Positions 8,425 to 63,035 of a DNA stretch of 64,000 nt are shown one piece after another (position 1 is the first letter of the stretch; every line of letters starts with the position of its first letter). Location: the sequence record PV764601.1; one strand, 5' to 3'. The notes beneath the pieces were generated by a model. The model worked only from the letters and a program-made list of their open reading frames with translations, was not told the DNA's origin and did not search any database. The translations under genes were made by a program, and so were the position numbers.

Positions 8425-8814
8425 TTAGACCCTTACTAGACGGGAAATTTGTTGCTGGTCAAGACCGATGTTCTTGAGCCACTGCGTAACGTCAGCAGCG
8501 CTAGGAACGTTGACCCAATTACCAGCGACGAAGCCGAGGATGGGGTGGAGGGGATGGATGATGCCGTTGTACCTGCATAGCACCCACCACAGATACTCAG
8601 TACCGTACTTGTCATAGCTCATGATCTCCGGCGAAAACTCGTATTTCGGAGTAATCATTTCAGGAGTGCTGACAGGAATCTGTTTCGACAATCGGAACTG
8701 AGGATTGTTCATCGAGCTTGCCAGATAATCCAGCAGCTGCTCAGTCTCGCTACCCTTCACGTCCACAGGAACAGTCGTCACCGGGATATAGGTACGCTGC
8801 TTGTACTGGTTCAT
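8425..8814 (-). CDS. Baseplate protein gp53/LysM-like
   Basis: PEIMSYDKYGTEYLWWVLCRYNGIIHP matches the gp53/LysM-like pattern. Confidence 0.75.
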   Translation of the reverse strand: MNQYKQRTYIPVTTVPVDVKGSETEQLLDYLASSMNNPQFRLSKQIPVSTPEMITPKYEFSPEIMSYDKYGTEYLWWVLCRYNGIIHPLHPILGFVAGNWVNVPSAADVTQWLKNIGLDQQQISRLVRV

Positions 8815-8817
8815 GCG

Positions 8818-9890: not shown

Positions 9891-12656
9891 TCAAGTGATG
9901 AGACCGCCATTGATGCCAACAAGCAGCATGTCATCAATGTAGCTGGAACTAAGACTAGGCATTTCGCCACGGTTGGAGGGGAACGGCGTTGCACTGAGGC
10001 CCATATCACGCTTCATCTGATTCCAGTCTTGCTGGGGCTGCACCGATTCCTTGGACTGGAACGGAGTAACCTCGTTAGGAATCTGCTGCATGGTGCCCTG
10101 ACCCATGAGCTTACTGGCTTCGTTGTAGTAGCCAGTACGATTACGGATACCCGAAGCACGGTACTTAGGATCGTTGATGCGCCACTTGATGTGATTCTCG
10201 CCAAGCATATCCATCGCCCGGTTAGAGCTGATGTTGTCACGCTTCAGGTACTCAAGAGTTGCCTGCTGATCCTTGGAGCCATTCGCCATTTCATCAACGG
10301 AGAACTGTGCCATTTCATCCAACGCTGCCTGACTTGGGATGATGCTGCCGTCGGAGTTGAGCATTCCCTTAGACTGCAAGCGAGCCATAAGTGCCTTGCC
10401 TCGGGAGCCCTGCCAACTCATGAAGCCAACGTTGGTTGCGCCATTAGCAGGATCGACGTGACTACCGAACACGTTCTTGCCAAGGAAGGCACCTTCGCGT
10501 CCAATCTCAGCCGTGTGGGCAAGTGCACCCTCATGAGAGAGGCCCGCTTTGCGGAAAGCTTGATACGTACCACTCATGAGATCACGCTGACCCTGCGAGA
10601 TAGAGAAGTTACCTGCACCGCTAGAAGCACGTGCAGAGTTCCACCCCGAAGTGTCATCGCCTCGCAAGAGCGCCCTTACTTCTGCGTCAAACGCGTCCTT
10701 GTCTACGGTGTACGTCCGATTTTTGTCATCCCAATACTTCTGCGCAACACGCACACGCGCAGCATATTCACGACGCTTAGGATCGGTGCTGTTGAAGTCG
10801 GCTTCTAGCTGCTGCGGAGTACGCATTGGCATAGCGAGCGGCATTTCATCGGAGCGAGTACCATCAGCACGTTCAGGACCACCGAGGTCTTCGGTATGGA
10901 ACATGGCCATAGCACCAGCCACCCAAGGGTTAGCACGTGCCAGAGTAGCGGCACGGCCTAGAAGACTACCACCTGCGCGCCAGCTGCCACGCATCAGCTT
11001 ACCTGCAAGCCAGCGTCCCGGACGCGTAAACAATGAAGCACCTGCGACAGTACCACCAACGACAGCAGCGTCCTTACCCGAAGCAAGGTCTTTGTCTTGA
11101 ATCGCGTCAGCTTCTGCACGGAGGGCGTCTGCTTCATCGTGCATACCTACCAAGTCGTAAGCGCTCGCCATCAATCCCTTAAAACCCTTGGTGATAGAGT
11201 TCATCACTCGGGGAGCGCGGTCGAAGTTCTCACGCACAGCCCACAGAGTTCCGAGGATACCACCAACACCAACGAGGCTCTTGAGCACGTTACCGACTTC
11301 GCTCAGAAGCTGCTTGGGGCCTGCGGCAGCGATAGCAGCGGCATTGCGGAATCCCGAGGGCATGCCGAAGTCATCGTCCCGGCTAGCCTTACGCTTACGA
11401 TCTAGTTCAGCGCGTCGGCGGTTACGCTCCTCTTGCTTGAACTGTTCGGACATGGTGTCTGCCAAGTCCTGACCAACGTTACCGATGTTGTCCAGACCGT
11501 TGAACAATTCCTTGTTGTCCTTCGGTTCAATGATGACGTGTTCTGGATCGTCAGGGGCTTCTGCGTCTTCGACCTTACGCTTAGAGCGCTTGGTTTCGAT
11601 GACTTCCTCGATCTTGTCGCCAATGACTTCGGAAATCTTTTCAGCCGCTTCGATTTCGCTCTGCGTGATCTTCTCATCGCGCTGGCGTGGGTTGGTAGTG
11701 GGAGAGTCCGGCGGAACGCCAGCGTCTTCCATCAACGCAACCTGCTCAGGGTCTTCCCAAGGCTTCGGGTAACCACGTGCTTGCCAGCTGCTAGGACGCC
11801 AGCCTCGCTTACTACGACGTCGGGGTGCAGAAGACGGTGCAGAGGGATGCTCAATGTCGGCAAGACTCTGGACAATAGGACCCGTCCAATTATCGAGAGC
11901 GGTGGCAGTGTCTGCTACTTCCGTCTCGTAGTCCGAGGCTGCGTAGTTATCCCCTCGATTGATGCGCCATTCTTCCACACGTTCACGCATAGACTGCGCT
12001 GTGTTTTCCATCTGAGCTTGTTCGGCCAACTGCTGTTGCTTCTCAGCGGCCTTTCGAGCACGTACTCGGATGTTGAACTTGGCCATGCGCATACGATCAC
12101 GCAGTTCCATCTGTCGAAGTCGATGCTGCTCTTCCGGGTCAAGGTCGCCTGCCAGCTGTTGTTGAATGGAAGCAGCTGCGGCCACACCGATAGGATCGGT
12201 CTCTTCCTGAGGTGCAGTGATTTTCAGATTGCGAATTGCGTGCTCACGTGCAGCGGCGTACTCCCGATCCTTCTTCATCTGCCACATGCGAAGGGCGTTA
12301 CCTGCTAGAGGACGCCCGTTCTTATCAAGCGGCGGAGATTCAGGAGGGCGTGCGCCAGTAGCCCTGATCTTGTCAAGGCGCATCTTGAGTGCAGCACCGA
12401 CAAGCGGGCGCCCGTTCTTACCTAGCAGTCGTGGGTCGATAGGGTGTGGAACCGGCTTGACGATTGCCTTCTTGTTCGCCTTGGCAGCACGCTTTGCGGC
12501 TTCGGTAGGCTTCTTCAACTGCGCCGATACCTTGATCTTGTCGTTGTTCAAGGCCCTACCGGCAGTCTTCGGGATGGCCTTTCGTACAGGCGGCTGATCC
12601 AGCAGCTTGGTTTTGACTTTGCCCTTGATGGGCTTGCTAGGAGGGCGCTTTGCCAT
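9891..12656 (-). CDS. Tape measure protein with C-terminal phage tail lysozyme domain
   Basis: 921 aa; coiled-coil and Ala/Gly-rich middle. C-terminal FRKAGLS..ALAHTAEIGRE..GFMSWQGSRGKAL resembles Phage_lysozyme2. Downstream of the chaperone gene. Confidence 0.75.
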   Translation of the reverse strand: MAKRPPSKPIKGKVKTKLLDQPPVRKAIPKTAGRALNNDKIKVSAQLKKPTEAAKRAAKANKKAIVKPVPHPIDPRLLGKNGRPLVGAALKMRLDKIRATGARPPESPPLDKNGRPLAGNALRMWQMKKDREYAAAREHAIRNLKITAPQEETDPIGVAAAASIQQQLAGDLDPEEQHRLRQMELRDRMRMAKFNIRVRARKAAEKQQQLAEQAQMENTAQSMRERVEEWRINRGDNYAASDYETEVADTATALDNWTGPIVQSLADIEHPSAPSSAPRRRSKRGWRPSSWQARGYPKPWEDPEQVALMEDAGVPPDSPTTNPRQRDEKITQSEIEAAEKISEVIGDKIEEVIETKRSKRKVEDAEAPDDPEHVIIEPKDNKELFNGLDNIGNVGQDLADTMSEQFKQEERNRRRAELDRKRKASRDDDFGMPSGFRNAAAIAAAGPKQLLSEVGNVLKSLVGVGGILGTLWAVRENFDRAPRVMNSITKGFKGLMASAYDLVGMHDEADALRAEADAIQDKDLASGKDAAVVGGTVAGASLFTRPGRWLAGKLMRGSWRAGGSLLGRAATLARANPWVAGAMAMFHTEDLGGPERADGTRSDEMPLAMPMRTPQQLEADFNSTDPKRREYAARVRVAQKYWDDKNRTYTVDKDAFDAEVRALLRGDDTSGWNSARASSGAGNFSISQGQRDLMSGTYQAFRKAGLSHEGALAHTAEIGREGAFLGKNVFGSHVDPANGATNVGFMSWQGSRGKALMARLQSKGMLNSDGSIIPSQAALDEMAQFSVDEMANGSKDQQATLEYLKRDNISSNRAMDMLGENHIKWRINDPKYRASGIRNRTGYYNEASKLMGQGTMQQIPNEVTPFQSKESVQPQQDWNQMKRDMGLSATPFPSNRGEMPSLSSSYIDDMLLVGINGGLIT

Positions 12657-21849: not shown

Positions 21850-21925
21850 TGGCGGACAAGGCAGGGGTCGAACCTGCGACGGCCGGATTAACAGTCCGGT
21901 GCTCTACCAGCTGAGCTACATGTCC
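21850..21925 (-). tRNA. trnN: tRNA-Asn (GTT), 76 nt, encoded CCA
   Basis: GGACATG TAGCTCAGCTGGTAGAGC A CCGGA CTGTTAA TCCGG CCGTC GCAGG TTCGACC CCTGC CTTGTCC G CCA: full cloverleaf with one U-U mismatch in the acceptor stem. Confidence 0.95.
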
Positions 21926-26706: not shown

Positions 26707-26764
26707 CTGTAAATATCAGGCAGCAGCGCCGCCCACGGCAGGCGCTTTTCTAGGACAGAGAAAC

Positions 26765-40945: not shown

Positions 40946-41301
40946 ACAAGCAACAGCTTACCATCAAGACGGACTTCTCTGAACTGGAAGAGAAAATCCA
41001 ATCCCACATGCGCCCCGTGCAGGAAGCGTGGAAGCCGTGCCAGCATCCTGAGCATGAACCGCCGATGATGCTGTATGTGCCTCACGGGCAGGAGTACGTT
41101 CACATATGTCCCGGTTGCCTGCGCTCTTGTGCGGTGCGGTCGAACGACGTGACCATGCTGACCATCACGGGGAGGACGGTCAAGGACCATGACCCCTTCT
41201 ATCACAGCCTGCCCCTTGATCCAGAAAAGCAGGCACGCATGGATAGTTGGCGTTCCGCTTTCGCTCAAATGGGTAGCTCGGATACTGTAAATAAGGTATA
41301 G
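40942..41301 (+). CDS. Hypothetical protein with Zn-binding-like motif
   Basis: C.HPEHEPP..Y.H.CP.C motif. Confidence 0.6.
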   Translation: MNKQQLTIKTDFSELEEKIQSHMRPVQEAWKPCQHPEHEPPMMLYVPHGQEYVHICPGCLRSCAVRSNDVTMLTITGRTVKDHDPFYHSLPLDPEKQARMDSWRSAFAQMGSSDTVNKV

Positions 41302-41559: not shown

Positions 41560-41796
41560 ATGTTGCTTCTTACTCGCCGCATTGGTGAAGCAGTCATGAT
41601 TGGCACCGGCTCGAATATGTCTACGGTGCGTATCCTTGGTGTCAAGGGCAATCAAGTGAAAATCGGTATTGACGCACCGAAGGAAACCCCGGTCAATCGT
41701 CAGGAAGTCCACGAACGCATCCAGCGCGGCGTGCCGTTTGCCAAGTCAACTAGCCCAACCGAAGTCACTTCGGGTGCGGAAAGCGAAGCAACCTGA
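41560..41796 (+). CDS. csrA: Carbon storage regulator CsrA/RsmA homolog
   Basis: [48 protein letters not shown] closely matches CsrA, including the RNA-binding Arg. Confidence 0.95.
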
Positions 41797-44968: not shown

Positions 44969-45226
44969 ATGGCAGTAGGTTTCGGACCAGCAGATGGCGT
45001 GCAGGATACGATTGACGCAACGGTTAACAACGCGATTGATCGAGCGCGCCTGATGCTACAAGGAACGGGCACTGAGGATTGTGTGGATTGCGACAACCCC
45101 ATTCCCCTCGCACGCCGTAAGGCGATGCCCAACGCAACTCGGTGTGTATGCTGTCAAAGCAAGTACGCCGTTACTGGCGAAACGTATTACAACCGTCGCG
45201 GATCGAAAGACTCCCAGCTGAGGTGA
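44969..45226 (+). CDS. DksA/TraR C4-type zinc-finger protein (YbiI-like)
   Basis: MAVGFGPADGVQD..CVDCDNPIPLARRKAMP.ATRCVCCQ. Confidence 0.9.
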   Translation: MAVGFGPADGVQDTIDATVNNAIDRARLMLQGTGTEDCVDCDNPIPLARRKAMPNATRCVCCQSKYAVTGETYYNRRGSKDSQLR

Positions 45227-48165: not shown

Positions 48166-49116
48166 ATGAAAGGTCCGCGCAAAACAATCAACATGAAGCT
48201 GCATCACCTGTACGATTTCAGCGAGCTATACCAAGCTATCTACAATCGGAATGAAGGCTACAAGATGCAGGAGGCAAACGCCTTCGCGCACATTGCATTC
48301 CAAATGCACCCGCGCGCCACCTCCTTGCTGGAACTTCTCTCTGGCGCACACAGCAAGCATGCCGATTACTTCAAGAAAGCATGGCCTGCGCAGGGCCTCA
48401 AGTATTCGGGTACTGATGGCACTTTGTCCGCAGGCAACCCCAGTATCATCCAAGTGCGCGACATTACGCAGCACATTTTCAAACAGCAGTGGGACATTGT
48501 GACCGCCCACTACTACTCGCCGAGTTCCGTATGTGATATGGACAAGGGAGGCATCGTCACTCGCGCTGGCGTACAAGGCTTCATCAACGCGGCGTTCTCG
48601 GCCACCAAGAAAGGTGGTATCTTCATCATGGATTTCTGCTCGGATGGCTACGCCACCGCAATCTCCCCTGATGAGCGCATGAGCGGTAAGCCTTCCACCC
48701 AAGAATTCCATGTGGACTGCTATACTCCGCTGTACCGATGGCTGGTCAGCAAGAACCTCGCCAGCAACACTCGGTACTCTAGTGTGGTCGTAGTTGCACG
48801 CGTTACCTCGTACTACGATCGGACCACCTCCAACAACGTTGACGAATTCAGCAGCATTTCCATCAAGGTTGATGGGCGTGTGGTTGTATCCGTCAAGATC
48901 AAGAACCCCTTCTGTCAGCGCTACTTCTCTGAGCCAGAGTTGACGGACATGATGCACGATGCAGGCTTCGCACAGGTCGATGCGTGGCACTGCGACTATG
49001 ATGCCAACGATTTCGAGAATCTCGATCCCGTGCTCACATGGGACGCAGACGAAACGGACGATGAGGATTTGCTCGAAAGCATCAAGGCCAACGTACTCGT
49101 AGGTATCCGCAAATGA
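48166..49116 (+). CDS. Class I SAM-dependent methyltransferase
   Basis: SLLELLSG motif I, WDIVTAHY, KGGIFIMD and RYFSEPEL.DMM..AGF motifs. Confidence 0.8.
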   Translation: MKGPRKTINMKLHHLYDFSELYQAIYNRNEGYKMQEANAFAHIAFQMHPRATSLLELLSGAHSKHADYFKKAWPAQGLKYSGTDGTLSAGNPSIIQVRDITQHIFKQQWDIVTAHYYSPSSVCDMDKGGIVTRAGVQGFINAAFSATKKGGIFIMDFCSDGYATAISPDERMSGKPSTQEFHVDCYTPLYRWLVSKNLASNTRYSSVVVVARVTSYYDRTTSNNVDEFSSISIKVDGRVVVSVKIKNPFCQRYFSEPELTDMMHDAGFAQVDAWHCDYDANDFENLDPVLTWDADETDDEDLLESIKANVLVGIRK

Positions 49117-52952: not shown

Positions 52953-52961
52953 GAACACACG

Positions 52962-52990
52962 AAAGGGGTGGCCTAACGGCTGCCCCTTTT
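52962..52990 (+). terminator. Rho-independent terminator upstream of the modification operon
   Basis: aaaggggtggcc-taac-ggctgcccc followed by TTTT. Confidence 0.8.
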
Positions 52991-53038
52991 GCGTTTCCCG
53001 ATCCTGTAAATATAGACTGTATCCTCAAGGAGATTCCA

Positions 53039-53761
53039 ATGTCGGAACAAACTGTGATTGTGTTCAAGCCTGCCCACCTAGTCTATGCAGCTATTGAGGC
53101 TGGCCTCGGACCGATGCACTACATGCAGGCCCTCGTAAAGATTGAGCCCATGCTGAAAAGTATCGGTGTGGAAATCAAGATGGAGGAGGTGGACGGCGGT
53201 GCACAGGGAGACCGTGAGGTCAATCAACTTGTAGACGCCATCAATGAGTACAAGGCAGATCAGCTGGCTAGGGCCGAGGCTGCCAAGGTTCCCTTTACCT
53301 GCGAGGAAATCTACGCCATCGAAAACTTCGATAAGGTTGAGCCGGCCATTTACGCTCTGCGTGGCTTCTACTTCAACCATCTAAAGGGTGGCCTAGACGT
53401 AGAACTCAGCGACTTCGATATGGAGGCGCTTCACAAAGACACCGAGATTGAAGTGCGCGTCATCAAGGAATTCTTCTTCGATCCGCGCCGCTTCTGGAGG
53501 CTGGCTTCCGTGTGGTTCAAGGGCGAGCCTGTCATGGTCATTCAGAACGCCGGGCGCGAAGGTGACGACCACGCCAAGCGGTTCATCACGAATCGGGAAG
53601 CATTCGATGCTCTCTGCAAGCACCTGAACAGTTTCATTCAGCGCACGCCTTGGGACTCTGCTTCCATCGAAACAGACACCGTTGACGAAACTGCACACCT
53701 CGGTATGACCCTCACTGAATTCTATGGAAATGAACTGAATGGACACTTCGAGCGATACTAA
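53039..53761 (+). CDS. Hypothetical phage protein
   Basis: AAGGAG RBS; WRLASVWFKGEPVMVIQNAGREGDDH motif. Confidence 0.7.
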   Translation: MSEQTVIVFKPAHLVYAAIEAGLGPMHYMQALVKIEPMLKSIGVEIKMEEVDGGAQGDREVNQLVDAINEYKADQLARAEAAKVPFTCEEIYAIENFDKVEPAIYALRGFYFNHLKGGLDVELSDFDMEALHKDTEIEVRVIKEFFFDPRRFWRLASVWFKGEPVMVIQNAGREGDDHAKRFITNREAFDALCKHLNSFIQRTPWDSASIETDTVDETAHLGMTLTEFYGNELNGHFERY

Positions 53762-54572
53762 GATTCCGTTCAAGCTGTACGACTTGAACGACGTTCGCCA
53801 CATCAATGCGGAGCACTTCCCGCTGGATGATGACGACTACTGCTGGACAGTAGAAATGACGCCGCACCTTCTGTACGGTTTGGCCGACAGGGCACAGGCG
53901 CACCCTATGGGGTTCGTTGGCACGGAGGACGAACCCGAATGGATTTGGGAAGTCAGCGGTCGCCGCGCCGTGCTGCCTGTTGGTGGCCTGCACGTTTCCA
54001 AGACTACCGAGCAGTTCATTCGCAAGCAGGGTTGGGGCTACCAACTGAACGTCGGCTTCGACAAGGTGATCCACCACTGCGCTACGATTGAGCGCCCGGA
54101 AGACAAGGAAGAAGATGCAGACGAATACACGCAATGGCTCGACACTCCTACCCAGCGTTCGTACAAGGCCCTGCACTATGGCAAGGAGCGCAAGGCATAC
54201 TCGGTCACCGTGCTTAATACACAAGGCGAAATCGTAGGCGGTCTGTTCGGTCTGAACTTCCCCACCTACATTAGCGTCGATAGCATGTTCTCCCTAACTC
54301 CGAACGCATCCAAGGCTGCAATGGTTGCGCTGGACTTGTGGGCCGGTCAGGCTGGTAAGCGCCTTGTCGATATGGAAACGTTTGCCCCACACCTCGGTGC
54401 CCTTGGCGCTATGGATATGGATGGCCTGCACTTCCGCGATTGGGTTGAGCGCATCAAGAAGGACGCCGCTGCGAATGCCTCTGGGTTCAACCTCCCTTTG
54501 TTTGATGGCATTCAGGCCCTTGACGCCACGCAAGTATTCAACCACGCACGTTACCTGAGAACGAAGAAATGA
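53739..54572 (+). CDS. aat: Leucyl/phenylalanyl-tRNA-protein transferase homolog
   Basis: RRAVL..LHVSK, FDKVIHHCA, EIVGGLFG, SMFS..NASKAA, LVD..HL.ALGA align with the Aat motifs. Confidence 0.9.
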   Translation: MDTSSDTKIPFKLYDLNDVRHINAEHFPLDDDDYCWTVEMTPHLLYGLADRAQAHPMGFVGTEDEPEWIWEVSGRRAVLPVGGLHVSKTTEQFIRKQGWGYQLNVGFDKVIHHCATIERPEDKEEDADEYTQWLDTPTQRSYKALHYGKERKAYSVTVLNTQGEIVGGLFGLNFPTYISVDSMFSLTPNASKAAMVALDLWAGQAGKRLVDMETFAPHLGALGAMDMDGLHFRDWVERIKKDAAANASGFNLPLFDGIQALDATQVFNHARYLRTKK

Positions 54573-56206
54573 ATTACGGACTGCGCGAGTTTCGCACTGA
54601 TCGGGTGTTCGGCGAGCAGCATGTTGTCGCACCCACCGCTGACGTTGTGAAGCTCATCCCGAAGGCAAAGTTTGAGCAGTATCTGCATCGGGTCAAAGCA
54701 CTTGATGGTGTGGGCATCTTTGGTGACTTGCTGCCCACCTACGATGAATACATTTCGGTACTGCTGGCAAACTTTGTGCATCAAAGCGTGCTGGTGGTTA
54801 CGAATGTGTATGACCTGAACACCGGGCAGATGGTAGGCCACACGATCCTGCACGATCTGTGGAACACCCGCGATCCTCTCAAGCAGGCCAAGTTTGACCT
54901 GTTCGGTGCGAGCTACTTTGAAGTCAGCGTCCCACCGGCGCTGCCAGAGTTTCTGGATGACGTGTTTGAGCAGCTGCCGCCGTGCATGATCGTCAACTAC
55001 TTCCCGATCTACCCGCGTGAGTATGGTTATCAGGATGACAAATCCTATGGACTCTACATCCCCGAGTCGATGGAAAGCTACGTTGCCTCCCTGTCGAAGA
55101 AGAATCGGGAGAACTATCGTGCGGTGATGCGACTGAACGAAGGCATTCGGGTGGAGCAGGTTAGCCTGCGCGACGTGATGAAGTCTGCTGACTTCCACAA
55201 GAACTACACCGCCAACCTTGAGCGGTGGACCTACACCTCGGATGATAACGTCACCAACATCATCCACATCAACAACATGCTGCATAACCTTGAGGACCGT
55301 AATGCACTGGTCCTCAATATCTATGACGCAGACAACCGCCTCATCTGCACCAACATCGGTGAAGTGCGTGGCGCTGTGTACGTGGACAAGCTGGCTGTGC
55401 CGGGTGTAAGCTACGAAGAGTACAAGAAGCGGCGCATCGGCTTCCTCGCCATCTACGAGGCGATCCGATTCATCGTGGAAGAACTGCCGTTCGACGTGAA
55501 GTATTACCACCTCGACACCGAGGGTACGTACAAGGAAAAGTTCATCCCGGTAGGCTTTGAACTGCCCATCGTTCCCCTCGACTACGCCGTGGTGGACTCG
55601 GACTTCTGCGCAGGCAACTACTGCGCTGAGTACGGCTTTGAACCTCCGGTATACATCCGTGGTAAGGGATGGGAGTTGAAGAAGCTGGACAGCAAGTGGA
55701 ACGATCAGATCGACGTGTCGGAGATCAAGCTGGCTGAATTCCTCAAGCTGACTTCTGAACTGTTCGGGGAAGATGACCTCAACACCTTCGACCTTGAGAC
55801 GATCAATCAGCTGTCGCATATCCTGATGACGGCGCGTGAGGGCGGAAGTGTTCGGATTCTTGTCGCAAGGTGGCGTTATCGGAACCCCATCGGCTACATT
55901 GTTTTCAACCAATTTAATCCGAACGCCTATATCGACCTTGTGTACGTCACTGAGCAGATGCGTGGCCACGGTGTCGGTAGGCAGATGATGCAAAAGGCGT
56001 TCGCGCTGCTGTCGAATGAATTTGACGGCGTTGCCCTGCACACTTCGGTTACCAACGACCCTGCCAAGCGCCTGTATCGTGCCCTCGGGTTTGAGCAGAG
56101 CCTGCCTGTCGTAGGCTACTACGATGACAAGACAGATTCGTTTGGTAATGACCTTGATAGCACGGACGCATTCTACTACTACAAGAGGTTGAAGCATGAA
56201 GATTGA
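54569..56206 (+). CDS. Two-domain GNAT protein (FemABX/Acetyltransf_6-like plus C-terminal classical GNAT)
   Basis: SMESYVASLSKKNRENYR; C-terminal LVYVTEQMRGHGVGRQMM..NDPAKRLYRALGF. Confidence 0.8.
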   Translation: MNYGLREFRTDRVFGEQHVVAPTADVVKLIPKAKFEQYLHRVKALDGVGIFGDLLPTYDEYISVLLANFVHQSVLVVTNVYDLNTGQMVGHTILHDLWNTRDPLKQAKFDLFGASYFEVSVPPALPEFLDDVFEQLPPCMIVNYFPIYPREYGYQDDKSYGLYIPESMESYVASLSKKNRENYRAVMRLNEGIRVEQVSLRDVMKSADFHKNYTANLERWTYTSDDNVTNIIHINNMLHNLEDRNALVLNIYDADNRLICTNIGEVRGAVYVDKLAVPGVSYEEYKKRRIGFLAIYEAIRFIVEELPFDVKYYHLDTEGTYKEKFIPVGFELPIVPLDYAVVDSDFCAGNYCAEYGFEPPVYIRGKGWELKKLDSKWNDQIDVSEIKLAEFLKLTSELFGEDDLNTFDLETINQLSHILMTAREGGSVRILVARWRYRNPIGYIVFNQFNPNAYIDLVYVTEQMRGHGVGRQMMQKAFALLSNEFDGVALHTSVTNDPAKRLYRALGFEQSLPVVGYYDDKTDSFGNDLDSTDAFYYYKRLKHED

Positions 56207-57071
56207 GATTCATTCCCAAACTGAGAACGACGCATCCTCGCAACTGAGTCCGAATTCCAAGAGCCTGCCTGAACTGGTCAACGCGCTGTCCTATCTGGCA
56301 TCGCTGGACGGCAACTACACGCTGCAAGGTGTGCCGAGTTCGTGGGCTCCACTGCTGACCTACCTGCGCTTCGCTATCGGCAGCACCACGGTCGAACTGC
56401 AAGGCGATGAGATTGTTGGTCCTGCATGGCAGGCAGCAGACTACGGCCGCAACATGACCGAAGTTGTGTTGGAAGCCATGTGTGCCATCCGCCCTGAAAC
56501 CTCCATCGTGCTGCGTCTGCTGGATTCGGAAACGCCCATCCCGCAGTCGCGCAGGGGCTACGAGTTCGCCGAGCCCGAGCACGATTTCGTGTCTAACCCT
56601 GTGATGGCAGAGCGTCGTGCCAAGGTCATCGGTATCGAAGCTGCTAGGGAACTGTACGCTCCCACGCGACCGCACGTGCTGGTTGTTCCAAATAATCCTG
56701 AAATCATCGAGTTGACTCAGAACCTCCTGACCCAACTCGGTATTCGTGACAAGTGGTATCTGCTGATCCTCGACGGCGCTGCTGGTATCGTGCCGGAAGA
56801 CCTGAGTAATCTGCTACCGGACCAGCATTACTCTGTGTGGGATGACACCTATAAACAAATGTGGAACATCCGAGACTACTTCTCGCGTACCTTCCACACT
56901 GCGGTGGTGTCTTACGTCAAGGGCGCACAGGTTACGGCAGTGGAATACGGCGTCAGCTACAGCACGTTCAGAGGCTCCCTGTTCCATGCGCGTACTGACC
57001 GCGACCTGACTCACCCCGAAAGTATTCTCAAGCTGCGCCATGCACTGCTAAATAACACCGCAAAGGAATAA
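56196..57071 (+). CDS. Hypothetical protein, possible DUF5591/ArcS-like C-terminal domain
   Basis: VLVVP...LLILDGAAGIVPEDL..LLP.QHY resembles the DUF5591 G-V-V-P-x-E-L...P...H-Y pattern (by-eye match only). Confidence 0.45.
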   Translation: MKIEIHSQTENDASSQLSPNSKSLPELVNALSYLASLDGNYTLQGVPSSWAPLLTYLRFAIGSTTVELQGDEIVGPAWQAADYGRNMTEVVLEAMCAIRPETSIVLRLLDSETPIPQSRRGYEFAEPEHDFVSNPVMAERRAKVIGIEAARELYAPTRPHVLVVPNNPEIIELTQNLLTQLGIRDKWYLLILDGAAGIVPEDLSNLLPDQHYSVWDDTYKQMWNIRDYFSRTFHTAVVSYVKGAQVTAVEYGVSYSTFRGSLFHARTDRDLTHPESILKLRHALLNNTAKE

Positions 57072-57073
57072 CC

Positions 57074-58117
57074 ATGCACGTAATGACTGCCGAGCATTAC
57101 ATTGAACGTTTCGGATGTTCAAATTCGATCTACCCTGAGCTAGATAAGGACGTGCAAGCACAGTGGGTAAAGCTCCGCAGAAAGCTTGCACCTTCCTATG
57201 CGGACAAGCCGCTGTACGTGAGCACGGACGGCTCAATCGCTGTTGAGTCTTACCCGGACGGAACCCTGTACGCAGGGTTCACCAACATGGGGATGGCAAC
57301 CGGCTTCATGTTAGGTACGGTCGATCAAATCAAGAACACCTTGATCGACCTGTCTCAATCCATCCCAACCTTTGAGCAGGATAATGCAGTTGTCGCACCT
57401 CCTGCCCTTGACTGCCCACATAGATACGGCGAAGACTTCCCCCGGGAAATCTACTCGCTCAAGTCAGACGTGGTGTATCTCGGGTATCGTGATCGCGCCG
57501 GAGTCATGACGTGGGATGAATATCTCACGTCCCTGTCCACTAAGCGTAGGGCACAAGTACGGCAGAAGCTGCGCGTATCCGAGCACCTCACGTTTGAGGT
57601 CGAGCCCTTGTTCGACTATGAGATTCCAGTCATCGCCGAGTGGATGCAGGAACATTGGAGTGCGCAGACAGCGGAGACGTGCTCGACGTGGCATCCGCTG
57701 GTAGTGGAAGGTTCGCTGTTACCGCTGGCAATGTCGGTGGCTGCTGGTTCAGGGTGCGATACCATCAAGGTTTACGATGGCTTGCGCCTTGTGGCAGTCG
57801 GTACGTTCGTGAAGCGCGTCAATCGTCGCGTCTTCGTTGGCTTCTTCAAGGACTCGACCTACGATGCTCCGAATGGGTTGGGTACTGCGGTGCTGGCGCA
57901 TGCTGTGCAGTATTACCTACAGCGGCCGGAGACGGGGACCGCCATCATTGATACCACATTGGCTGCTGACTTTGTGGAAGGGCACACCTACAGTCAGTAC
58001 AAGCGTCCCGTGTGTAATGACACGATGACGTATGCAGGTATCGCAATCTGTTCGGCCACCCCCAAAGAGAAAATGTGGCCTCCCTACTACCAAGCAGGAG
58101 CATGGGTTTATGAGTAA
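57074..58117 (+). CDS. FemABX/Acetyltransf_6-like GNAT protein
   Basis: TWDEYLTSLSTKRRAQVRQKLR, GLGTAVLAHAV, YSQYKR. Confidence 0.7.
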   Translation: MHVMTAEHYIERFGCSNSIYPELDKDVQAQWVKLRRKLAPSYADKPLYVSTDGSIAVESYPDGTLYAGFTNMGMATGFMLGTVDQIKNTLIDLSQSIPTFEQDNAVVAPPALDCPHRYGEDFPREIYSLKSDVVYLGYRDRAGVMTWDEYLTSLSTKRRAQVRQKLRVSEHLTFEVEPLFDYEIPVIAEWMQEHWSAQTAETCSTWHPLVVEGSLLPLAMSVAAGSGCDTIKVYDGLRLVAVGTFVKRVNRRVFVGFFKDSTYDAPNGLGTAVLAHAVQYYLQRPETGTAIIDTTLAADFVEGHTYSQYKRPVCNDTMTYAGIAICSATPKEKMWPPYYQAGAWVYE

Positions 58118-58904
58118 CGTTCGCGCAGCCTTCGAGAAGTACCGTGTATACCGCGAGGTTCTGGCGCGCAATAAGGGCCTACCCTTCAAGCCGGTCGCTG
58201 CACCGAATGGCTTTACCGTTGAGGAGGTCCATACCGAGGACGCAGGGGCCATCCTTGTTCCTATGGGCGACACTGAGTTCCCTGCCTTCTACGATGAGGT
58301 TCTGAACTTGTCGGACAATCTGGCGCACACGATGCGTCCAGAGGTTCGTGTTATTGCAAGCCGTCCCAGCTTTGAGGCGCACCTGCAATCGCTGTCGCAG
58401 TTGAAGCGCAGCTGGAAGAACACGGCCCACCTCATGTTCCATCCCGCGCGTGGTGGAGAGTTTGACCAGTTCAAGGCTGGACTCATCCACATCATCGTCT
58501 CGAACCTGCAACACTTCAATCCGGGCATGACGTTTGAAGGTGCGACAGAAACGGCGGTGGCATACCTTGAGTACATCGCTGCATGGTCGCTGATTCCCAA
58601 CAGTGACGTGGTGCTGGTTTTCCGTCCTAGCGAGGATGGCAAGTTCACCCCATGCGGCATTGGCATGTTCCAAATGTGCCCAGAGAACGATGAGTATCAC
58701 TGGGTCAACACGTTGCTCCTGCGTGACCAATACGCCAAGGAGTACACCATCGGGAACGTAATGCTCCTGCAAGCCCTGCGCCTGTGCTACAAGGCGAACG
58801 TGCTGTATCTCAACCTCGGCCTCGCCGTCTTCGACTACAAGAAGACGTGGAAGCCCATTCCTTTTGAGCGCAAGGTTCCGGTCTTGCTCGACCCCACGGA
58901 GTAA
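58110..58904 (+). CDS. FemABX/Acetyltransf_6-like GNAT protein
   Basis: ATG 58110 after AGGAG; SFEAHLQSLSQLKR, IGNVMLLQAL..YLNLGLAVFDYKKTW. Confidence 0.75.
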   Translation: MSNVRAAFEKYRVYREVLARNKGLPFKPVAAPNGFTVEEVHTEDAGAILVPMGDTEFPAFYDEVLNLSDNLAHTMRPEVRVIASRPSFEAHLQSLSQLKRSWKNTAHLMFHPARGGEFDQFKAGLIHIIVSNLQHFNPGMTFEGATETAVAYLEYIAAWSLIPNSDVVLVFRPSEDGKFTPCGIGMFQMCPENDEYHWVNTLLLRDQYAKEYTIGNVMLLQALRLCYKANVLYLNLGLAVFDYKKTWKPIPFERKVPVLLDPTE

Positions 58905-58909
58905 CCCAC

Positions 58910-60433
58910 ATGTGTTCCATTTTCGGTGTCCATAACCTGCGTTGGTCTGACGCACAGCAGAAGCGCGTCGTCTTCAACGCACTGATGACGCTGGCTGTTG
59001 AAAGTTGCGAGCGTGGCCGTGATGCAATGGGCTACGCTGCCTTCATCACGTCGCTTGATGGCACCACGCATCGCGTGTTCCAGCGTCAGTCTTTCCGTTC
59101 GATTCGGGATACTCATCCTGACCTCAATGCACGTGCACTGGCTGTAATCAGTCAGGTGCAGATCATGATGCGCAACCTCGACGCCATGACTCCGAACGAG
59201 GTGAGAAGTTTCACCCTGATCGCAAACTGCCGAGCCGAGCCGACTACTGAATGGCTACAGGACCAGCGCGAGGATGACATTCAGCCCTACGCCAACTGGC
59301 CCTCTGAACGCTATTTCGCTGTGCATAACGGCGTCATCGCCAACGATGCGCAATTCATCCCGGAACATTCCCGCACCAAGGTGGATAGCGCTGCGATTCC
59401 CTACGCGATTGAGCGTGGTGAGTTTGAAAGCCTGATCGGTTCTGTTGCGTCAGCGGTCTACGACGTGGAGACTGATACGCTGTGGCTCGCCCGCAACTAT
59501 CGGCCCCTCTCCGCTGTGTGCCCTAGCTTTGGCTTCCATGAAAACGGCGCTGCGGTAGTATTCGCCAGTGAGCGGCAGGCCATTACGCGTGCACTGTTTC
59601 GTGACGGCATGTATACCGATTACCCAATCGCCGCCAACTCGACTTGGAAGTTCAACGGCCACATCGACCGGAACTCTTTCTTCGTAGGCAAGGCGGCAAC
59701 CACTCGCTTCGACAAGGACCCGAACGGCGGCAACCCTGAGAGCGCCATCGTGATCCTGTCCGGTGGTATGGACAGCACGGTTAGTGCAGAAATCGCATGC
59801 CGGGATCACACCAACATCGTGCTCGCTCACTTCCATTATGGTTGCCGGGCACAGACGCGCGAGACGGAGGCAGTGACGGCTATTCATGCTGCACTGGTTG
59901 AGCGTCATCCTCGGAAGACGATCACCCTCAAGTTCTTCGACCTCGACTTCCTCAAGCAGCTGGGTGGCAACCCGCTGGTGGACGACACGATGGAAGTGGC
60001 AACCGGCAAGGACGGCATCGAGTACGCGAATGAATGGGTGCCGTTCCGTAATGGCCTGATGGTCGCCATGATGGCAGCGTATGCTGATCGGTGGAGCTTC
60101 GGTGCAATCTACACCGGCGCCAATCTTGAAGAAGCAGGTGCTTTCGGGGACAATGAAAAGGAATTCTTCGACCTGATGGAGAAGGCAATCGCCATTGGCT
60201 CCAAGGCCGCTCCGAAGTTGGTCAACCCTCTGGACAAGCTGATGAAGCATGAGGTGGCACAGACGGGTCTGATGCTGGAAGCGCCAATTCACCTTAGCTG
60301 GAGTTGCTACCACGGCGGTGAGCTTCATTGCGGAAACTGTGGGCCATGCCAGCTGAGGCGAACCGCGTTTGCCATGATTGGTAAGGACGATCCTGTAAAG
60401 TATATGCAGGACGCGCCGCTAGTAGGACTGTGA
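58910..60433 (+). CDS. queC: Gat-QueC: class II glutamine amidotransferase fused to 7-cyano-7-deazaguanine synthase-like domain
   Basis: N-terminal MCSIFG, RGRD, NCRAEPT, VHNGVIAN, VDS; PP-loop SGGMDS, VPFRN, SWSCY..HCGNCGPCQLR Zn motif. Confidence 0.9.
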   Translation: MCSIFGVHNLRWSDAQQKRVVFNALMTLAVESCERGRDAMGYAAFITSLDGTTHRVFQRQSFRSIRDTHPDLNARALAVISQVQIMMRNLDAMTPNEVRSFTLIANCRAEPTTEWLQDQREDDIQPYANWPSERYFAVHNGVIANDAQFIPEHSRTKVDSAAIPYAIERGEFESLIGSVASAVYDVETDTLWLARNYRPLSAVCPSFGFHENGAAVVFASERQAITRALFRDGMYTDYPIAANSTWKFNGHIDRNSFFVGKAATTRFDKDPNGGNPESAIVILSGGMDSTVSAEIACRDHTNIVLAHFHYGCRAQTRETEAVTAIHAALVERHPRKTITLKFFDLDFLKQLGGNPLVDDTMEVATGKDGIEYANEWVPFRNGLMVAMMAAYADRWSFGAIYTGANLEEAGAFGDNEKEFFDLMEKAIAIGSKAAPKLVNPLDKLMKHEVAQTGLMLEAPIHLSWSCYHGGELHCGNCGPCQLRRTAFAMIGKDDPVKYMQDAPLVGL

Positions 60434-61038
60434 TGAAAGCACTGATTGTAATGGCCCACCCGGATGACAGTTTCATTTTCGGCCACAACATCCGGCAGGC
60501 CACGCCTCATATCGAGTGGCACGATCTATGTGCCACTTACGGTCATCGCACTGCACGCGGCAAGGAATTCCTTGCCGCCTGTAAGGTGTTGAAATCGAGG
60601 GGTATCCAGCTTGCGTTGGACGACGATTACCAAGGCACGCTGACCGAGGACACTGCGCTGCTGGTGGAGAACATCTATCAGCAGTTGCACAATGGGTACA
60701 ACTACCTCGTAACGCACAACCCGAACGGTGAGTATGGCCACCGCCATCATCGGGAACTACACAAGCACACCATGCTCGCGTGGTCGATGCTGCCAGTCAA
60801 GGAGCGCCCATCCGTGCTGGTGCCTGCATTCAACTACAAGGTGCCGGACTTCACGCTCTACAGCGAAACCAAAGCCAAGAGCAAGTGCCTGCAAATCTAC
60901 GAGCGCGAAATGTATATGATCGGCAACTTCGATCTGATTGCAGAGTCGTTCGTGTTGCATGAAAAGGGAGAGCGCGGACCGTCGCTTCATGTTGAGGTAA
61001 CTCGCAGCCTCCACCACCGAAAGTTCAAAGAGGATTGA
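60433..61038 (+). CDS. PIG-L/LmbE-family deacetylase
   Basis: AHPDD and THNPNGEYGHRHH motifs; TGATG coupling. Confidence 0.9.
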   Translation: MKALIVMAHPDDSFIFGHNIRQATPHIEWHDLCATYGHRTARGKEFLAACKVLKSRGIQLALDDDYQGTLTEDTALLVENIYQQLHNGYNYLVTHNPNGEYGHRHHRELHKHTMLAWSMLPVKERPSVLVPAFNYKVPDFTLYSETKAKSKCLQIYEREMYMIGNFDLIAESFVLHEKGERGPSLHVEVTRSLHHRKFKED

Positions 61039-61040
61039 AA

Positions 61041-62144
61041 GTGAAGAAGATCATTGTAGTTCGCAGTCCTGAGTCGGACTTCCGCCCTGAGAAGTGGATC
61101 ACTAACAAGGTGATCGCCGCCCTCCGCCAAACCGCAGCAGACAAGACTCGGACCCTCAACGGTCATGAGTTTGAAGTCGTTGAGGTGAACAGCGGCGAAG
61201 AATTCAACAGCATGTCGTCGCAGTCCATGTTCTATTCCGACGAGACGATGACCAAATCGTTCTGCAAGGGTGTGCTGGGTGTGCTGGATCACATCGCTGA
61301 TGGCGACGTGGTTTACTTTGCCGATGGTTGGTCGCCTGCCGTTCCGGTGCTCAAGTTCCACATGCACTGCGCAGGCATCAAGGCCCACCTGACCGGCTTC
61401 TTCCATAGCAGCGTTGAGACTCCGGGTGACTTCCTGTATTCGGCAGGCTCGTGGGTACGCAGCCTCGAAGAAACCCTGCTGGATTGTTTCACCGAAACCT
61501 ACGTAGCTACCGATTATGGAGTGGACCTACTAAACTCCACCAACGTCAACGTCATTGGCCTGCCGGTCATTAGCCCACAAGATACCAACCCTGCGCAGCT
61601 GCGCCGTTCGCTGACTGCGCGTGCTGAAGAGGCAAAGCCTGTCGTGGGCTGGAGCCATCGTTGGGCAGAGGATAAGCGCCCCGAAGACTTCATCGAACTG
61701 GCCCATCGTCTTGGCGACACCCGCACCTTCCGCGTTCTGCACCCGGTTCCCCTCGACACCGCACCGCTGTATCAGGAAGCGGTGGATGCAGGTATTGAGT
61801 TCGTCCTATGTGATACCAAGGACAAGTATTGGACCGAGGTGGCGAAACTGAGTTTCCTGTTTAGCTCTGCAACGCTGGAGACTTTCGGTTACAGCGTTAT
61901 TGATGCAGTGGTCCTAGGCGCGATTCCGGTAGTGCCCAACCGCGCGTGCTACCCATACATGTACCGCGACGAGCACCTGTACTACACGCTGGAAGATGCA
62001 GCCCAACTCCTGAGTAAGGATTGGGTACGCCACACTCTGTTCGACGTGTTGAGGGCCCCAGTGTTCGTGCAGGTCAACGCATTTGAGCACACGATTACCA
62101 CTCGCCTGACTAAGTTGCTCGACAACGACCGCTACCCGAACTAA
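61041..62144 (+). CDS. GT-B glycosyltransferase (GT4-like)
   Basis: HRWAEDKRP and ETFGYSVIDAV..GAIPVVP..YP donor-binding motifs; GTG start after GAGGA (alternative TTG 61035). Confidence 0.9.
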   Translation: MKKIIVVRSPESDFRPEKWITNKVIAALRQTAADKTRTLNGHEFEVVEVNSGEEFNSMSSQSMFYSDETMTKSFCKGVLGVLDHIADGDVVYFADGWSPAVPVLKFHMHCAGIKAHLTGFFHSSVETPGDFLYSAGSWVRSLEETLLDCFTETYVATDYGVDLLNSTNVNVIGLPVISPQDTNPAQLRRSLTARAEEAKPVVGWSHRWAEDKRPEDFIELAHRLGDTRTFRVLHPVPLDTAPLYQEAVDAGIEFVLCDTKDKYWTEVAKLSFLFSSATLETFGYSVIDAVVLGAIPVVPNRACYPYMYRDEHLYYTLEDAAQLLSKDWVRHTLFDVLRAPVFVQVNAFEHTITTRLTKLLDNDRYPN

Positions 62145-62147
62145 GCA

Positions 62148-62996
62148 ATGGCTCGCATTGGAATTGTAGGGGGCCTTGGCGTGGGTAAAGCTCACGCCAT
62201 CGCTGCCTTGAATCTCGGACATACGCTGTCCTTTGTCGTAGACGTGGACCCCAAGGCTAGTGAAGTCTACAGCAGATCGGTGCTGGTTAATCAATGGGGT
62301 TCGTTCTATGAAGAAGCTGTGCTGGAGCGTCAGGTTCCAGTATACAAAACACTGACTGGCGCAATGATGAGTACGTGGAATGCTCCGGACCTCATTATCA
62401 TCGCCACGCCAGATAGCACTCATGACCTGTTAGTGAGGCAAGCGGTACAATGCTTCCCTGAGTCTCGCGTGCTGTGTGAGAAGCCGTATAAGTCAGACGT
62501 GATTGATGATCGTGTGCTTGTTTCCGCCGAATGGATTTACCATTCCAAGCTGGCAGGCGTGCACGACCCCATCACGGCGCTGGCTATGTACCACAACAAC
62601 ATGCCTACCGATGGTTCTCCGTGGAACCACGTAATCAAGTACGACCTAGGCTTCCACCTGATGAGCATCATCGGATGGCAGCGTGGCTTCGACGTGGCTG
62701 CAAAGGTAGATCATGCTGCAACCACTCCAGTAAATTGGGGTGGTGAAGTTCAAGTGCTAGGGTTCGATGATGTGATCGAAGTAGCCGCAATGTACAATCC
62801 GAATGCAGCAGGCGTAACAGAGTTGATAGGTGCGCCCCTGATAGAGGATGCGGAAATAATCGTCCGTCATGGCGATACCACTACGTACTTGGATTGGGAA
62901 GCCCCGTTGTTTGAACGGCAGATTTCCTCAGTCCTACGTGGCGTGCACCCGGTCACTAGCAAGGTGGCTGTGGGCATCGACTTCAAACTAGGCTGA
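62148..62996 (+). CDS. Gfo/Idh/MocA-family NAD(P)-dependent oxidoreductase
   Basis: RIGIVGGLGVGKAH, IATPDSTH, VLCEKP. Confidence 0.85.
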   Translation: MARIGIVGGLGVGKAHAIAALNLGHTLSFVVDVDPKASEVYSRSVLVNQWGSFYEEAVLERQVPVYKTLTGAMMSTWNAPDLIIIATPDSTHDLLVRQAVQCFPESRVLCEKPYKSDVIDDRVLVSAEWIYHSKLAGVHDPITALAMYHNNMPTDGSPWNHVIKYDLGFHLMSIIGWQRGFDVAAKVDHAATTPVNWGGEVQVLGFDDVIEVAAMYNPNAAGVTELIGAPLIEDAEIIVRHGDTTTYLDWEAPLFERQISSVLRGVHPVTSKVAVGIDFKLG

Positions 62997-63000
62997 ATTT

Positions 63001-63035
63001 AGGGGCTGCCGGGAGCGATCTTGGTGGCCCCTTTT
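63001..63035 (+). terminator. Terminator closing the operon
   Basis: aggggctgcc...ggtggcccc followed by TTTT. Confidence 0.7.

Follow-up and report, generated by a model that had tools for sequence, protein, structure and literature searches.

To our knowledge, the side chains of the 7-deazaguanines found in phages are small, being nitrile, amide, amidine or aminomethyl groups, methyl and formyl forms, a carboxyl group, or absent altogether. In phage 9g, the glutamine amidotransferase-QueC fusion Gat-QueC and the transglycosylase DpdA give rise to the amidine form, dG+ (PMC6884629). A stand-alone type of the amidine-forming enzyme ArcS, ArcS2, has been described for Vibrio phage nt-1, and PC-x3-KPY-x2-S-x2-H was quoted as its C1-domain motif (PMC10516641). 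In a different setting, a FemX-like enzyme (Orf11/Sbb17) aminoacylates an amino sugar from Gly-tRNA (PMC12945691; PDB 9wqx, which is among the model matches of g5 described below). Here, a ten-gene operon (g1 to g10) of Xanthomonas phage PhiXhv-12 is analyzed in which a Gat-QueC, an ArcS2 relative and FemX-like proteins are encoded together with sugar-processing enzymes. PhiXhv-12 is a jumbo phage of 227,648 bp infecting X. hortorum pv. vitians. The window, that is the whole 64,000-nucleotide stretch under study, corresponds to positions 62001-126000 of record PV764601.1 (window coordinate = record coordinate - 62000), and the 10 kb of the operon are 100% identical to record positions 115039-125035. 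Positions below are those of the window unless marked as record positions. We infer both chemistry and target from gene content: the operon would be the module for the late stages of a 7-deazaguanine DNA hypermodification in which the base bears an amino sugar together with an aminoacyl or peptidyl group that is N-acetylated, a reading for which we consider the chances to be even. The unit and its borders consist of the following features.

52960-52991 (+): terminator-like hairpin ending the preceding unit, -24.4 kcal/mol, z = -4.5, U-rich tail; overlooked by the terminator scan
53004-53012 (+): CTGTAAATA motif, candidate phage promoter element, 27 nt before the g1 start
53039-53761 (+): g1, 240 aa, no assignable family; sole match phrog_8664 (unknown function), 2.5e-21
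53739-54572 (+): g2, 277 aa, leucyl/phenylalanyl-tRNA-protein transferase (Aat) family, PF03588
54569-56206 (+): g3, 545 aa, N-terminal FemX-like Acetyltransf_6 domain fused to a C-terminal acetyl-CoA-type GNAT
56196-57071 (+): g4, 291 aa, degenerate stand-alone member of the ArcS2/DUF5591 family (PF17884)
57074-58117 (+): g5, 347 aa, FemX-like tandem-GNAT transferase by predicted fold
58110-58904 (+): g6, 264 aa, FemX/MprF-like GNAT-fold protein; GenBank start, longest open reading frame (ORF) from 58032
58910-60433 (+): g7, 507 aa, Gat-QueC (class II glutamine amidotransferase fused to QueC)
60430-61038 (+): g8, 202 aa, PIG-L family de-N-acetylase, PF02585, 3.5e-7, 31.2 bits against a cut-off of 28.2
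61041-62144 (+): g9, 367 aa, probable GT-B (GT4-like) glycosyltransferase; GenBank start, alternative TTG at 61035
62148-62996 (+): g10, 282 aa, Gfo/Idh/MocA NAD(P)-dependent oxidoreductase, PF01408, 3.2e-9, 38 bits against a cut-off of 24
63001-63032 (+): intrinsic terminator ending the operon, 14-bp stem with 8 GC pairs, T-rich tail, -25.0 kcal/mol, z = -3.6

The core of the operon is formed by g7, whose QueC (2.3e-49) and GATase_7 (1.5e-8) domains are both present and which is 32-33% identical to Nonagvirus Gat-QueC over 99% of its length. The N-terminal Met-Cys with the nucleophile cysteine, the PP-loop and the C-terminal zinc-binding cysteine cluster align with those of the Nonagvirus (FritzHoffmann) 9g-type enzyme and of the copies in two metagenomic relatives, L008 and L014, confirming its initial annotation as a Gat-QueC. 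The upstream g4 had been called DUF5591-like. Compared with Pfam DUF5591 alone it scores weakly (0.056), and a single-sequence search of the Protein Data Bank (PDB) with g4 gave nothing useful. A profile built from g4 and its first relatives, however, retrieves 82 proteins of about 280-320 aa, nearly all of them PF17884/DUF5591, and g4 reaches 77.8 bits (E 7e-23) against the 77-member family HMM, as compared with 356-424 bits for intact members. Family membership is thus firm, while the protein itself is a degenerate ArcS2: in g4 and its L008 orthologue the quoted motif is lost: its cysteine has been deleted, and other residues occupy the positions of Asp, Lys, Tyr and His, although conservation of the motif positions reaches 95-100% among the other 77 members. 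Both proteins likewise show deletion or replacement at most of the remaining near-invariant positions. Since this catalytic-core motif is lost, ArcS chemistry is unlikely for g4. The gene is also among the fastest evolving of the operon, at 40% identity to the L008 copy, level with g1, versus 65-83% for the recognizable enzymes. The motif is intact in Vibrio phages GR7B and GR11A and in a further metagenomic relative, L013, and ArcS2 seems to have decayed after the Gat-QueC fusion took over its role. A possible transglycosylase function for g4 was considered and rejected, as the protein falls in the ArcS2 family.

Related clusters were identified in five lineages.

Lineage 1, PhiXhv group: the ten-gene operon
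Lineage 2, L008, a 35-kb Logan contig of a divergent metagenomic phage: all ten genes, order unchanged
Lineage 3, L014, a 110-kb JGI contig: radical SAM protein, two unknowns, a 431-aa Acetyltransf_6/ATE_C protein, Gat-QueC, g6-like, PIG-L, small GNAT, g9-like glycosyltransferase, Gfo; then topoisomerase genes
Lineage 4, L013, an end-truncated 8.9-kb Logan contig: g1-like, g3-like, homologue of the accessory gene gX (see below), intact ArcS2, g5-like, two QueC paralogues, g6-like
Lineage 5, Vibrio phages GR7B/GR11A: DNA ligase, intact ArcS2, two QueC paralogues, g6-like, g5-like, an unknown of ~690 aa, lysine-2,3-aminomutase-like radical SAM protein, small GNAT; then topoisomerase

A QueC-type enzyme and a g6-like protein occur in all five lineages, and g6 homologues adjoin QueC or Gat-QueC in L008, L013, L014, GR7B and GR11A. 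Each lineage also has another FemX-like protein and a GNAT acetyltransferase, if for the end-truncated L013 contig the fused g3-like gene is counted as the source of both. The trio of PIG-L, glycosyltransferase and Gfo goes with the Gat-QueC fusion (lineages 1-3), intact ArcS2 with two stand-alone QueCs (lineages 4 and 5); in the Gat-QueC lineages ArcS2 is degenerate (1 and 2) or was not seen in the 21 kb read of L014 (3). The clusters of GR7B/GR11A and L014 are located among ligase and topoisomerase genes. Amino acid identities between PhiXhv-12 and L008 are 40% (g1), 80% (g2), 83% (g3), 40% (g4), 75% (g5), 50% (g6), 65% (g7), 74% (g8), 80% (g9) and 77% (g10). Conservation in relatives, proposed initially as a check, was therefore found both for the complete gene order (L008, 40-83%) and, beside QueC-type genes, for sub-modules in three more lineages. 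Four near-identical relatives of PhiXhv-12 belong to the first lineage, namely PhiXhv-15, PhiXhv-16, Ep026 and Ep032 (96.5-99.3% nucleotide identity). Xanthomonas phage Ep026 (OQ603353.1) and Erwinia phage Ep032 (OQ603359.1) have recorded hosts of different genera, yet each is 96.5% identical to the 10 kb of the operon, and their identities are equal both for the operon DNA and for each of six proteins searched in the phage collection. Stand-alone ArcS2 is also encoded in a QueD-ArcS2-QueC trio on two other metagenomic phage contigs (L011:9570-11531 and L012:9550-11582), next to a GT2 glycosyltransferase, a PI3/PI4-kinase-like protein and an InPase-domain protein. These loci may represent further undescribed decorated deazaguanine systems.

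The remaining components of a deazaguanine pathway are encoded outside the window.

Record 8706-9386: FolE (PF01227, 1.3e-27)
Record 11391-12290: QueE, annotated as 'GTP 3',8-cyclase' (6e-9 to Nonagvirus QueE)
Record 211088-211546: QueD (PTPS, 1.9e-16)
Record 216554-218260 (-): TGT-superfamily protein, 568 aa, annotated as 'hypothetical'

A search of the genome for folE, queD and queE, as well as dpdA, had been suggested, and the three precursor genes are all present. FolE and QueE lie between clamp and DNA polymerase genes in PhiXhv-12 and GR11A alike, and because this order is conserved, the deazaguanine precursor genes can be regarded as embedded in the replisome module of the clade. Specifically, the order FolE, small ORF, sliding clamp, QueE and DNA polymerase is kept between PV764601.1 8706-15890 and MT366761.1 9443-15812, with a dihydrofolate reductase gene between clamp and QueE and an additional small ORF between QueE and polymerase in PhiXhv-12. 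A 355-aa gene between FolE and QueE was tried as a transglycosylase candidate and rejected, as it encodes the sliding clamp.

As to dpdA, a gene of the DpdA1/2 type was not found, but a distant TGT-superfamily gene that could serve as a DNA transglycosylase is present. No DpdA is annotated in PhiXhv-12, phmmer with Nonagvirus DpdA returned no match, and tblastn with the same query gave no PhiXhv-group record among the best 60 of 248 matching records. The region around QueC in a Campylobacter phage likewise offered no transglycosylase lead. The TGT-like gene was detected only by synteny with GR11A, where its counterpart lies one small gene away from a sigma-factor gene. The two proteins (the latter, GR11A_00148, annotated as 'TGT domain-containing protein') share 38% identity over 438 aa (E 9e-110), and Pfam TGT matches the same region at 0.07 in PhiXhv-12 and 2.6e-5 in the Vibrio protein. 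A two-sequence profile matches the archaeosine tRNA-guanine transglycosylase 1iq8 (2.3e-5) via the N-terminal and Cys-rich stretches. The protein also shares 27% identity (E 5e-14) with a 'tRNA guanine transglycosylase' from Achromobacter phage Motura, whose system has been interpreted by others as a DNA deazaguanine system (PMC7824862). Membership in the DpdA1 or DpdA2 subfamilies was not found; rather, the family is apparently an uncharacterized transglycosylase subfamily of jumbo phages. It is common to GR7B/GR11A, nine Pseudomonas putida jumbo phages, NCTB, Burkholderia phage BCSR5 and Achromobacter phage Motura. Judged by sequence, every component class of a deazaguanine DNA system appears to be encoded by the phage, with a transglycosylase of an uncharacterized subfamily.

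The operon is further characterized by a series of putative aminoacyl-tRNA-type transferases. With 102.6 bits (2.2e-29) against PF03588, g2 is well above the cut-off of 22.7, and it matches the E. coli Aat structure 2z3k (2.3e-13), in agreement with its initial assignment to Aat. As it stays below the TIGR00667 equivalog cut-off (77.5 vs 143.55), it is classified from sequence as an Aat family member and not as an orthologue of the housekeeping enzyme. In the alignment to 2z3k, the Asp is conserved and the adjacent Gln is replaced by Glu, two positions that we take to be the catalytic residues of E. coli Aat. Three FemABX/Acetyltransf_6-like GNATs had been reported in addition, and this holds for g5, g6 and the N-terminal domain of g3, except that g3 also carries an ordinary acetyl-CoA-type GNAT. 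In g3, Acetyltransf_6 is found at aa 178-305 (25.3 bits, narrowly over the cut-off of 22) and Acetyltransf_1 at aa 427-508 (2.4e-14). The protein is 83% identical to the L008 copy and matches its L013 homologue at E 2.5e-171, and pattern scans of 185,579 species genomes and of JGI metagenome contigs found no relatives of its N-terminal domain.

No family match was obtained for g5 or g6 in Pfam-type searches, neither their family profiles nor the single g5 sequence reached a solved structure in PDB, and IMG/VR pattern scans with the g4, g5 or g6 family gave nothing useful. AlphaFold2 models were more informative. For the g5 model (pLDDT 65, pTM 0.70), the best Foldseek match is Weissella FemX (6e-7), followed by Sbb17 and Sba18 with bound streptothrisamine (Sbb17 2e-6), with further matches to A-PGS/L-PGS/MprF, FemA, ATE1 and Aat. 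For g6 (pLDDT 67, pTM 0.71), full-length matches are FemX 4ii9 (2.5e-5), the MprF soluble domain (5.5e-5) and ATE1, and its C-terminal half matches single-domain GCN5 GNATs. Comparison of shallow g5, g6 and g3 N-terminal profiles by hhalign gave only a short local match between g5 and the g3 N-terminal domain (E 3.6e-4) and none for g6. Generally, g5 is rare, with six clusters among 1.84 billion protein representatives, and its traceable relatives are located in QueC/ArcS2-type clusters.

The sugar-processing genes occupy the 3' end of the operon. The calls of PIG-L for g8 and Gfo/Idh/MocA for g10 hold, both being over curated cut-offs, and homologues of both are present in L008 and L014. The glycosyltransferase call for g9 is consistent with all matches found, each of which is sub-threshold: the L008 orthologue matches Glycos_transf_1 at 0.032, the homologue P0097 has PF00534, the homologue P0105 is named a glycosyltransferase, and the top five PDB matches of an 18-sequence profile are all glycosyltransferases, though weak (0.008-0.11). 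A single-sequence PDB search with g9 gave nothing useful. Taken together, the sequence matches suggest that g9 is probably a GT-B glycosyltransferase.

All ten ORFs (53039-62996, +) are tightly packed and agree with the GenBank CDS table. Genes overlap at g1/g2 (23 nt), g2/g3 (4 nt), g3/g4 (11 nt), g5/g6 (8 nt) and g7/g8 (4 nt), and are separated by 2 nt at g4/g5, 5 nt at g6/g7, 2 nt at g8/g9 and 3 nt at g9/g10. Nearly all annotated genes are on the + strand across record 88765-160704, and because this whole 72-kb block is +, shared strand says little about the operon. The unit is delimited by its tight junctions and two terminators, not by co-orientation. Both flanking hairpins fold strongly and have closely similar U-rich tails, so that the ten-gene operon between terminators proposed initially stands. 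The upstream motif was recovered as well: CTGTAAATA is enriched in the window, with three copies versus 0.17 expected, all on the + strand (26707-26715, 41285-41293 and 53004-53012), and the shared core extends to GATCCTGTAAATAT at two of the three sites. The copy at 26707 is located ~50 nt 5' of the first gene in a long + strand block. As a candidate promoter element, CTGTAAATA might be recognized by the sigma factor that the phage itself encodes.

Based on these family assignments, we hypothesize the following pathway. FolE, QueD and QueE would provide 7-carboxy-7-deazaguanine (CDG), which Gat-QueC (g7) would convert to the nitrile or amidine stage (preQ0 or archaeosine base) with glutamine as nitrogen donor. 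The TGT-superfamily enzyme would swap guanine in phage DNA for the deazaguanine. GT-B glycosyltransferases and PIG-L deacetylases are the usual route to a hexosamine with a free amine, as in the mycothiol, bacillithiol and aminoglycoside pathways. Here, g9 may attach N-acetylglucosamine (GlcNAc) or a similar sugar, g8 may take off the acetyl group to leave a free amine, and g10 may oxidize the sugar. The transferases g6, g5, the N-terminal domain of g3 and the Aat-like g2 would transfer amino acids from aminoacyl-tRNA to side-chain or amino-sugar amines, and the C-terminal GNAT of g3 would acetylate the last amine, thus capping the new alpha-amine. The most likely role of g4 would be that of a deazaguanine-recognizing subunit, non-catalytic or re-purposed. 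As FemX-like genes occur without sugar genes in lineage 5 and the readable part of lineage 4, at least one amino acid, added by the universal partner g6, is probably placed on the deazaguanine side chain itself. Archaeal ArcS reportedly attaches lysine to the nitrile, and in lineages 4 and 5 such an addition would provide the acceptor amine. The resulting bulky adduct could protect phage DNA against restriction enzymes, CRISPR nucleases and nucleases recognizing simpler deazaguanines. More tentatively, and with somewhat more doubt than belief, we suggest that DNA guanine is replaced in this phage clade by a 7-deazaguanine bearing an amino sugar as well as an aminoacyl or short peptidyl chain, the latter being N-acetylated and built on the nucleobase by aminoacyl-tRNA-dependent transferases. 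The single biosynthetic line for an aminoacylated and glycosylated adduct put forward in the initial annotation is supported by synteny, precursor genes and literature, its chemistry being the conjectural part.

Several observations weigh against a DNA hypermodification of this kind. The TGT-like protein is very distant from experimentally tested DpdA enzymes: with an HMM built from six diverse DpdA proteins, no match was better than E = 1 (E = 2 for the TGT-like protein), and no TGT was found when 46 unassigned PhiXhv-12 proteins were scanned against Pfam at E 0.01. The models of g5 and g6 are moderate (pLDDT 65-67, TM 0.34-0.47, alignments of 6-7 sequences). While they and the sequence of g3 suggest a FemX-like double-GNAT fold for the g3 N-terminal domain, g5 and g6, a tRNA and an acyl-CoA donor are indistinguishable by fold. 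The sole, indirect pointer to an aminoacyl-tRNA donor comes from the 431-aa Acetyltransf_6 paralogue of L014, which also matches ATE_C (9e-4). In addition, g4 is missing the ArcS motif and g1 is unaccounted for. No sugar genes are found in the Vibrio lineage or in the readable part of L013, and sugar and amino acid therefore need not share one adduct. Finally, the paper describing PhiXhv-12 mentions neither the locus nor DNA modification.

The initial annotation had left three targets side by side, a 7-deazaguanine DNA base, virion proteins and the host surface receptor. We favor the base, because FemX-like and GNAT genes follow QueC/ArcS2 genes even where sugar genes are missing. The same association, seen in five out of five lineages despite varied gene order, is the main argument against several unrelated functions sharing one transcript, in which case plain dG+ or dPreQ0 would be present in DNA and the sugar and aminoacyl enzymes would act on host peptidoglycan or lipopolysaccharide precursors, on virion proteins or, by Aat-type N-terminal tagging, on host proteins. 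Proteins and cell-wall precursors are indeed the normal substrates of the Aat and FemX families, enzymes of the GT-B, PIG-L and Gfo types typically belong to envelope glycan pathways, the g1 domain occurs in many phages without Que genes, and other host-takeover genes (ADP-ribosyltransferase, CsrA) are found in the genome. However, g5 is extremely rare and its traceable relatives lie in clusters with QueC or ArcS2, and the lack of any g3 N-terminal relative in the species genomes speaks against recent acquisition of a bacterial envelope gene. We consider such a composite transcript unlikely, if still worth attention.

A free small molecule, i.e., a glycosylated and aminoacylated 7-deazapurine resembling pyrrolopyrimidine or peptidyl-nucleoside antibiotics and acting on the host or on competing phages, is clearly improbable in our judgement. 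Aminoacyl-tRNA-dependent FemX-like enzymes are known from natural-product pathways (PMC12945691), Sbb17/Sba18 of streptothricin-type pathways are among the best g5 fold matches, and preQ0 is a precursor of deazapurine antibiotics (PMC5699537). Yet the genome encodes a TGT-superfamily protein whose gene is syntenic with that of the Vibrio relatives, the precursor genes lie within the replisome module, DNA is the end point of every phage deazaguanine pathway studied by experiment (PMC6884629, PMC10516641), and no export or self-resistance genes were seen in the operon. To a tRNA target we assign the lowest probability, slightly below that of the free molecule. A decorated deazaguanine would in this case be placed at position 34 of GUN-anticodon tRNAs, including the phage tRNA-Asn(GUU), tuning translation or evading anticodon nucleases. 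This would accommodate the finding that the sole phage tRNA gene, for tRNA-Asn (anticodon GTT), belongs to the four types that carry queuosine. Galactosyl-, mannosyl- and glutamyl-queuosine are precedents for tRNA bases bearing sugars or amino acids. In addition, tRNA is the original substrate of ArcS and Gat-QueC (PMC6884629). GR11A, however, has a tRNA-Cys and no queuosine tRNA, a full phage-encoded precursor pathway suggests bulk demand, and the TGT-like protein groups with jumbo-phage proteins that others read as DNA transglycosylases (PMC7824862). No tRNA gene besides that for tRNA-Asn(GTT) at 21850-21925 (-) occurs in the window, and the genome annotation lists no other; its presence may be coincidental or linked to the phage deazaguanine genes.

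No paper describing this gene combination was found in the literature, full-text searches giving only known deazaguanine work, which agrees with the initial view that it is not a described pathway. Should the chemistry be borne out, a tRNA-dependent decoration would represent a new kind within phage 7-deazaguanine systems. If true, a deazaguanine DNA hypermodification as proposed here would show, for the first time, DNA being modified through tRNA-dependent, non-ribosomal peptide-bond formation, and no purine modification known would be more elaborate. The version with both sugar and amino acid would widen natural DNA chemistry and add a new substrate class for aminoacyl-tRNA-dependent transferases. 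It would also mark an escalation step between phage DNA modifications and modification-dependent nucleases. The pairing of QueC and FemX-like proteins in five lineages makes the idea directly testable on the cultured phages PhiXhv-12, -15 and -16 and GR7B/GR11A. In addition, the analysis reveals an overlooked jumbo-phage transglycosylase family and an ArcS2 that apparently decayed once the Gat-QueC fusion had arisen.

Two further genes and a number of neighboring features were noted. The C-terminal ~150 aa of g1 recur in many unrelated phages that encode no Que genes, with 33-43% identity in phages of Bacillus, Lactococcus, Vibrio, Acinetobacter, Pseudomonas and Brevundimonas, whose records annotate only hypothetical proteins at the match. 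Homologues of g1 are found in L008 and L013, and its family profile has no match in PDB. A pathway-specific role for g1 was rejected, as its domain is widespread in phages. The second gene, gX, may be an accessory component.

48166-49116 (+): gX, 316 aa, possible accessory gene ~4 kb 5' of the operon

A gX homologue (E 5e-87) lies between the g3-like and ArcS2 genes in L013, while in L008 the gene is located ~4 kb upstream as in PhiXhv-12; no Pfam match was found for gX. Also 5' of the operon, a CsrA homologue and a DksA-like zinc-finger protein are annotated in the record (41560-41796 and 44969-45226, +). Counter-defense or host-takeover domains are encoded at record 207275-208132 and 209437-210558 and in one of the 46 unassigned proteins, namely Tad3 (anti-Thoeris, 4e-27), NADAR, Acb1 (anti-CBASS, 1e-16) and ADP-ribosyltransferase (2e-8).

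The closest described system is the dG+ pathway of phage 9g and the Queuovirinae, consisting of FolE, QueD, QueE, Gat-QueC and DpdA (Hutinet et al. 2019, PMC6884629). PhiXhv-12 has the same precursor genes, a full-length Gat-QueC homologue and a TGT-superfamily gene; however, its transglycosylase of ~570 aa shows no DpdA1-type relation by HMM, and its Gat-QueC is set among nine genes found in no described deazaguanine cluster. ArcS2 of Vibrio phage nt-1 and archaeal ArcS convert preQ0 to the amidine (Cui et al. 2023, PMC10516641), and g4 is from the same stand-alone family. Unlike nt-1 ArcS2, g4 and its L008 orthologue are without the motif, intact ArcS2 being found in the equivalent clusters of the Vibrio and L013 relatives. 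Orf11 of the BD-12 pathway and Sbb17/Sba18 (PMC12945691; PDB 9wqx, 9wqw, 9wqy) are, together with Weissella FemX, the best matches of the g5 model, and would share with the proposed role of g5 the acylation of a free sugar amine from aminoacyl-tRNA. Identity to g5 is only ~12%, and the context is phage nucleic acid and not an actinomycete antibiotic cluster. The mycothiol and bacillithiol pathways (MshA/MshB/MshC/MshD and BshA/BshB/BshC) employ the same four enzyme types as the operon, represented here by g9, g8, the aminoacyl transferases and the C-terminal GNAT of g3. In these pathways, GlcNAc attached by a GT-B enzyme is deacetylated by a PIG-L enzyme, the amine receives an amino acid, and a GNAT adds an acetyl group to the product. 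Weak matches to MshB and MshD models are present in the operon, far under equivalog cut-offs. Since the operon would use tRNA-dependent GNAT-fold transferases instead of an ATP-dependent ligase, this is a likeness of logic and not of membership. We know of no aminoacyl-tRNA-type transferases in phage thymidine or cytosine hypermodification pathways. The post-replicative 5-hydroxymethylpyrimidine hypermodifications of phages are likewise multi-enzyme decorations of a base with sugars or amino acid-derived groups that counter restriction, whereas the base concerned in PhiXhv-12 would be a guanine replaced by a deazapurine.

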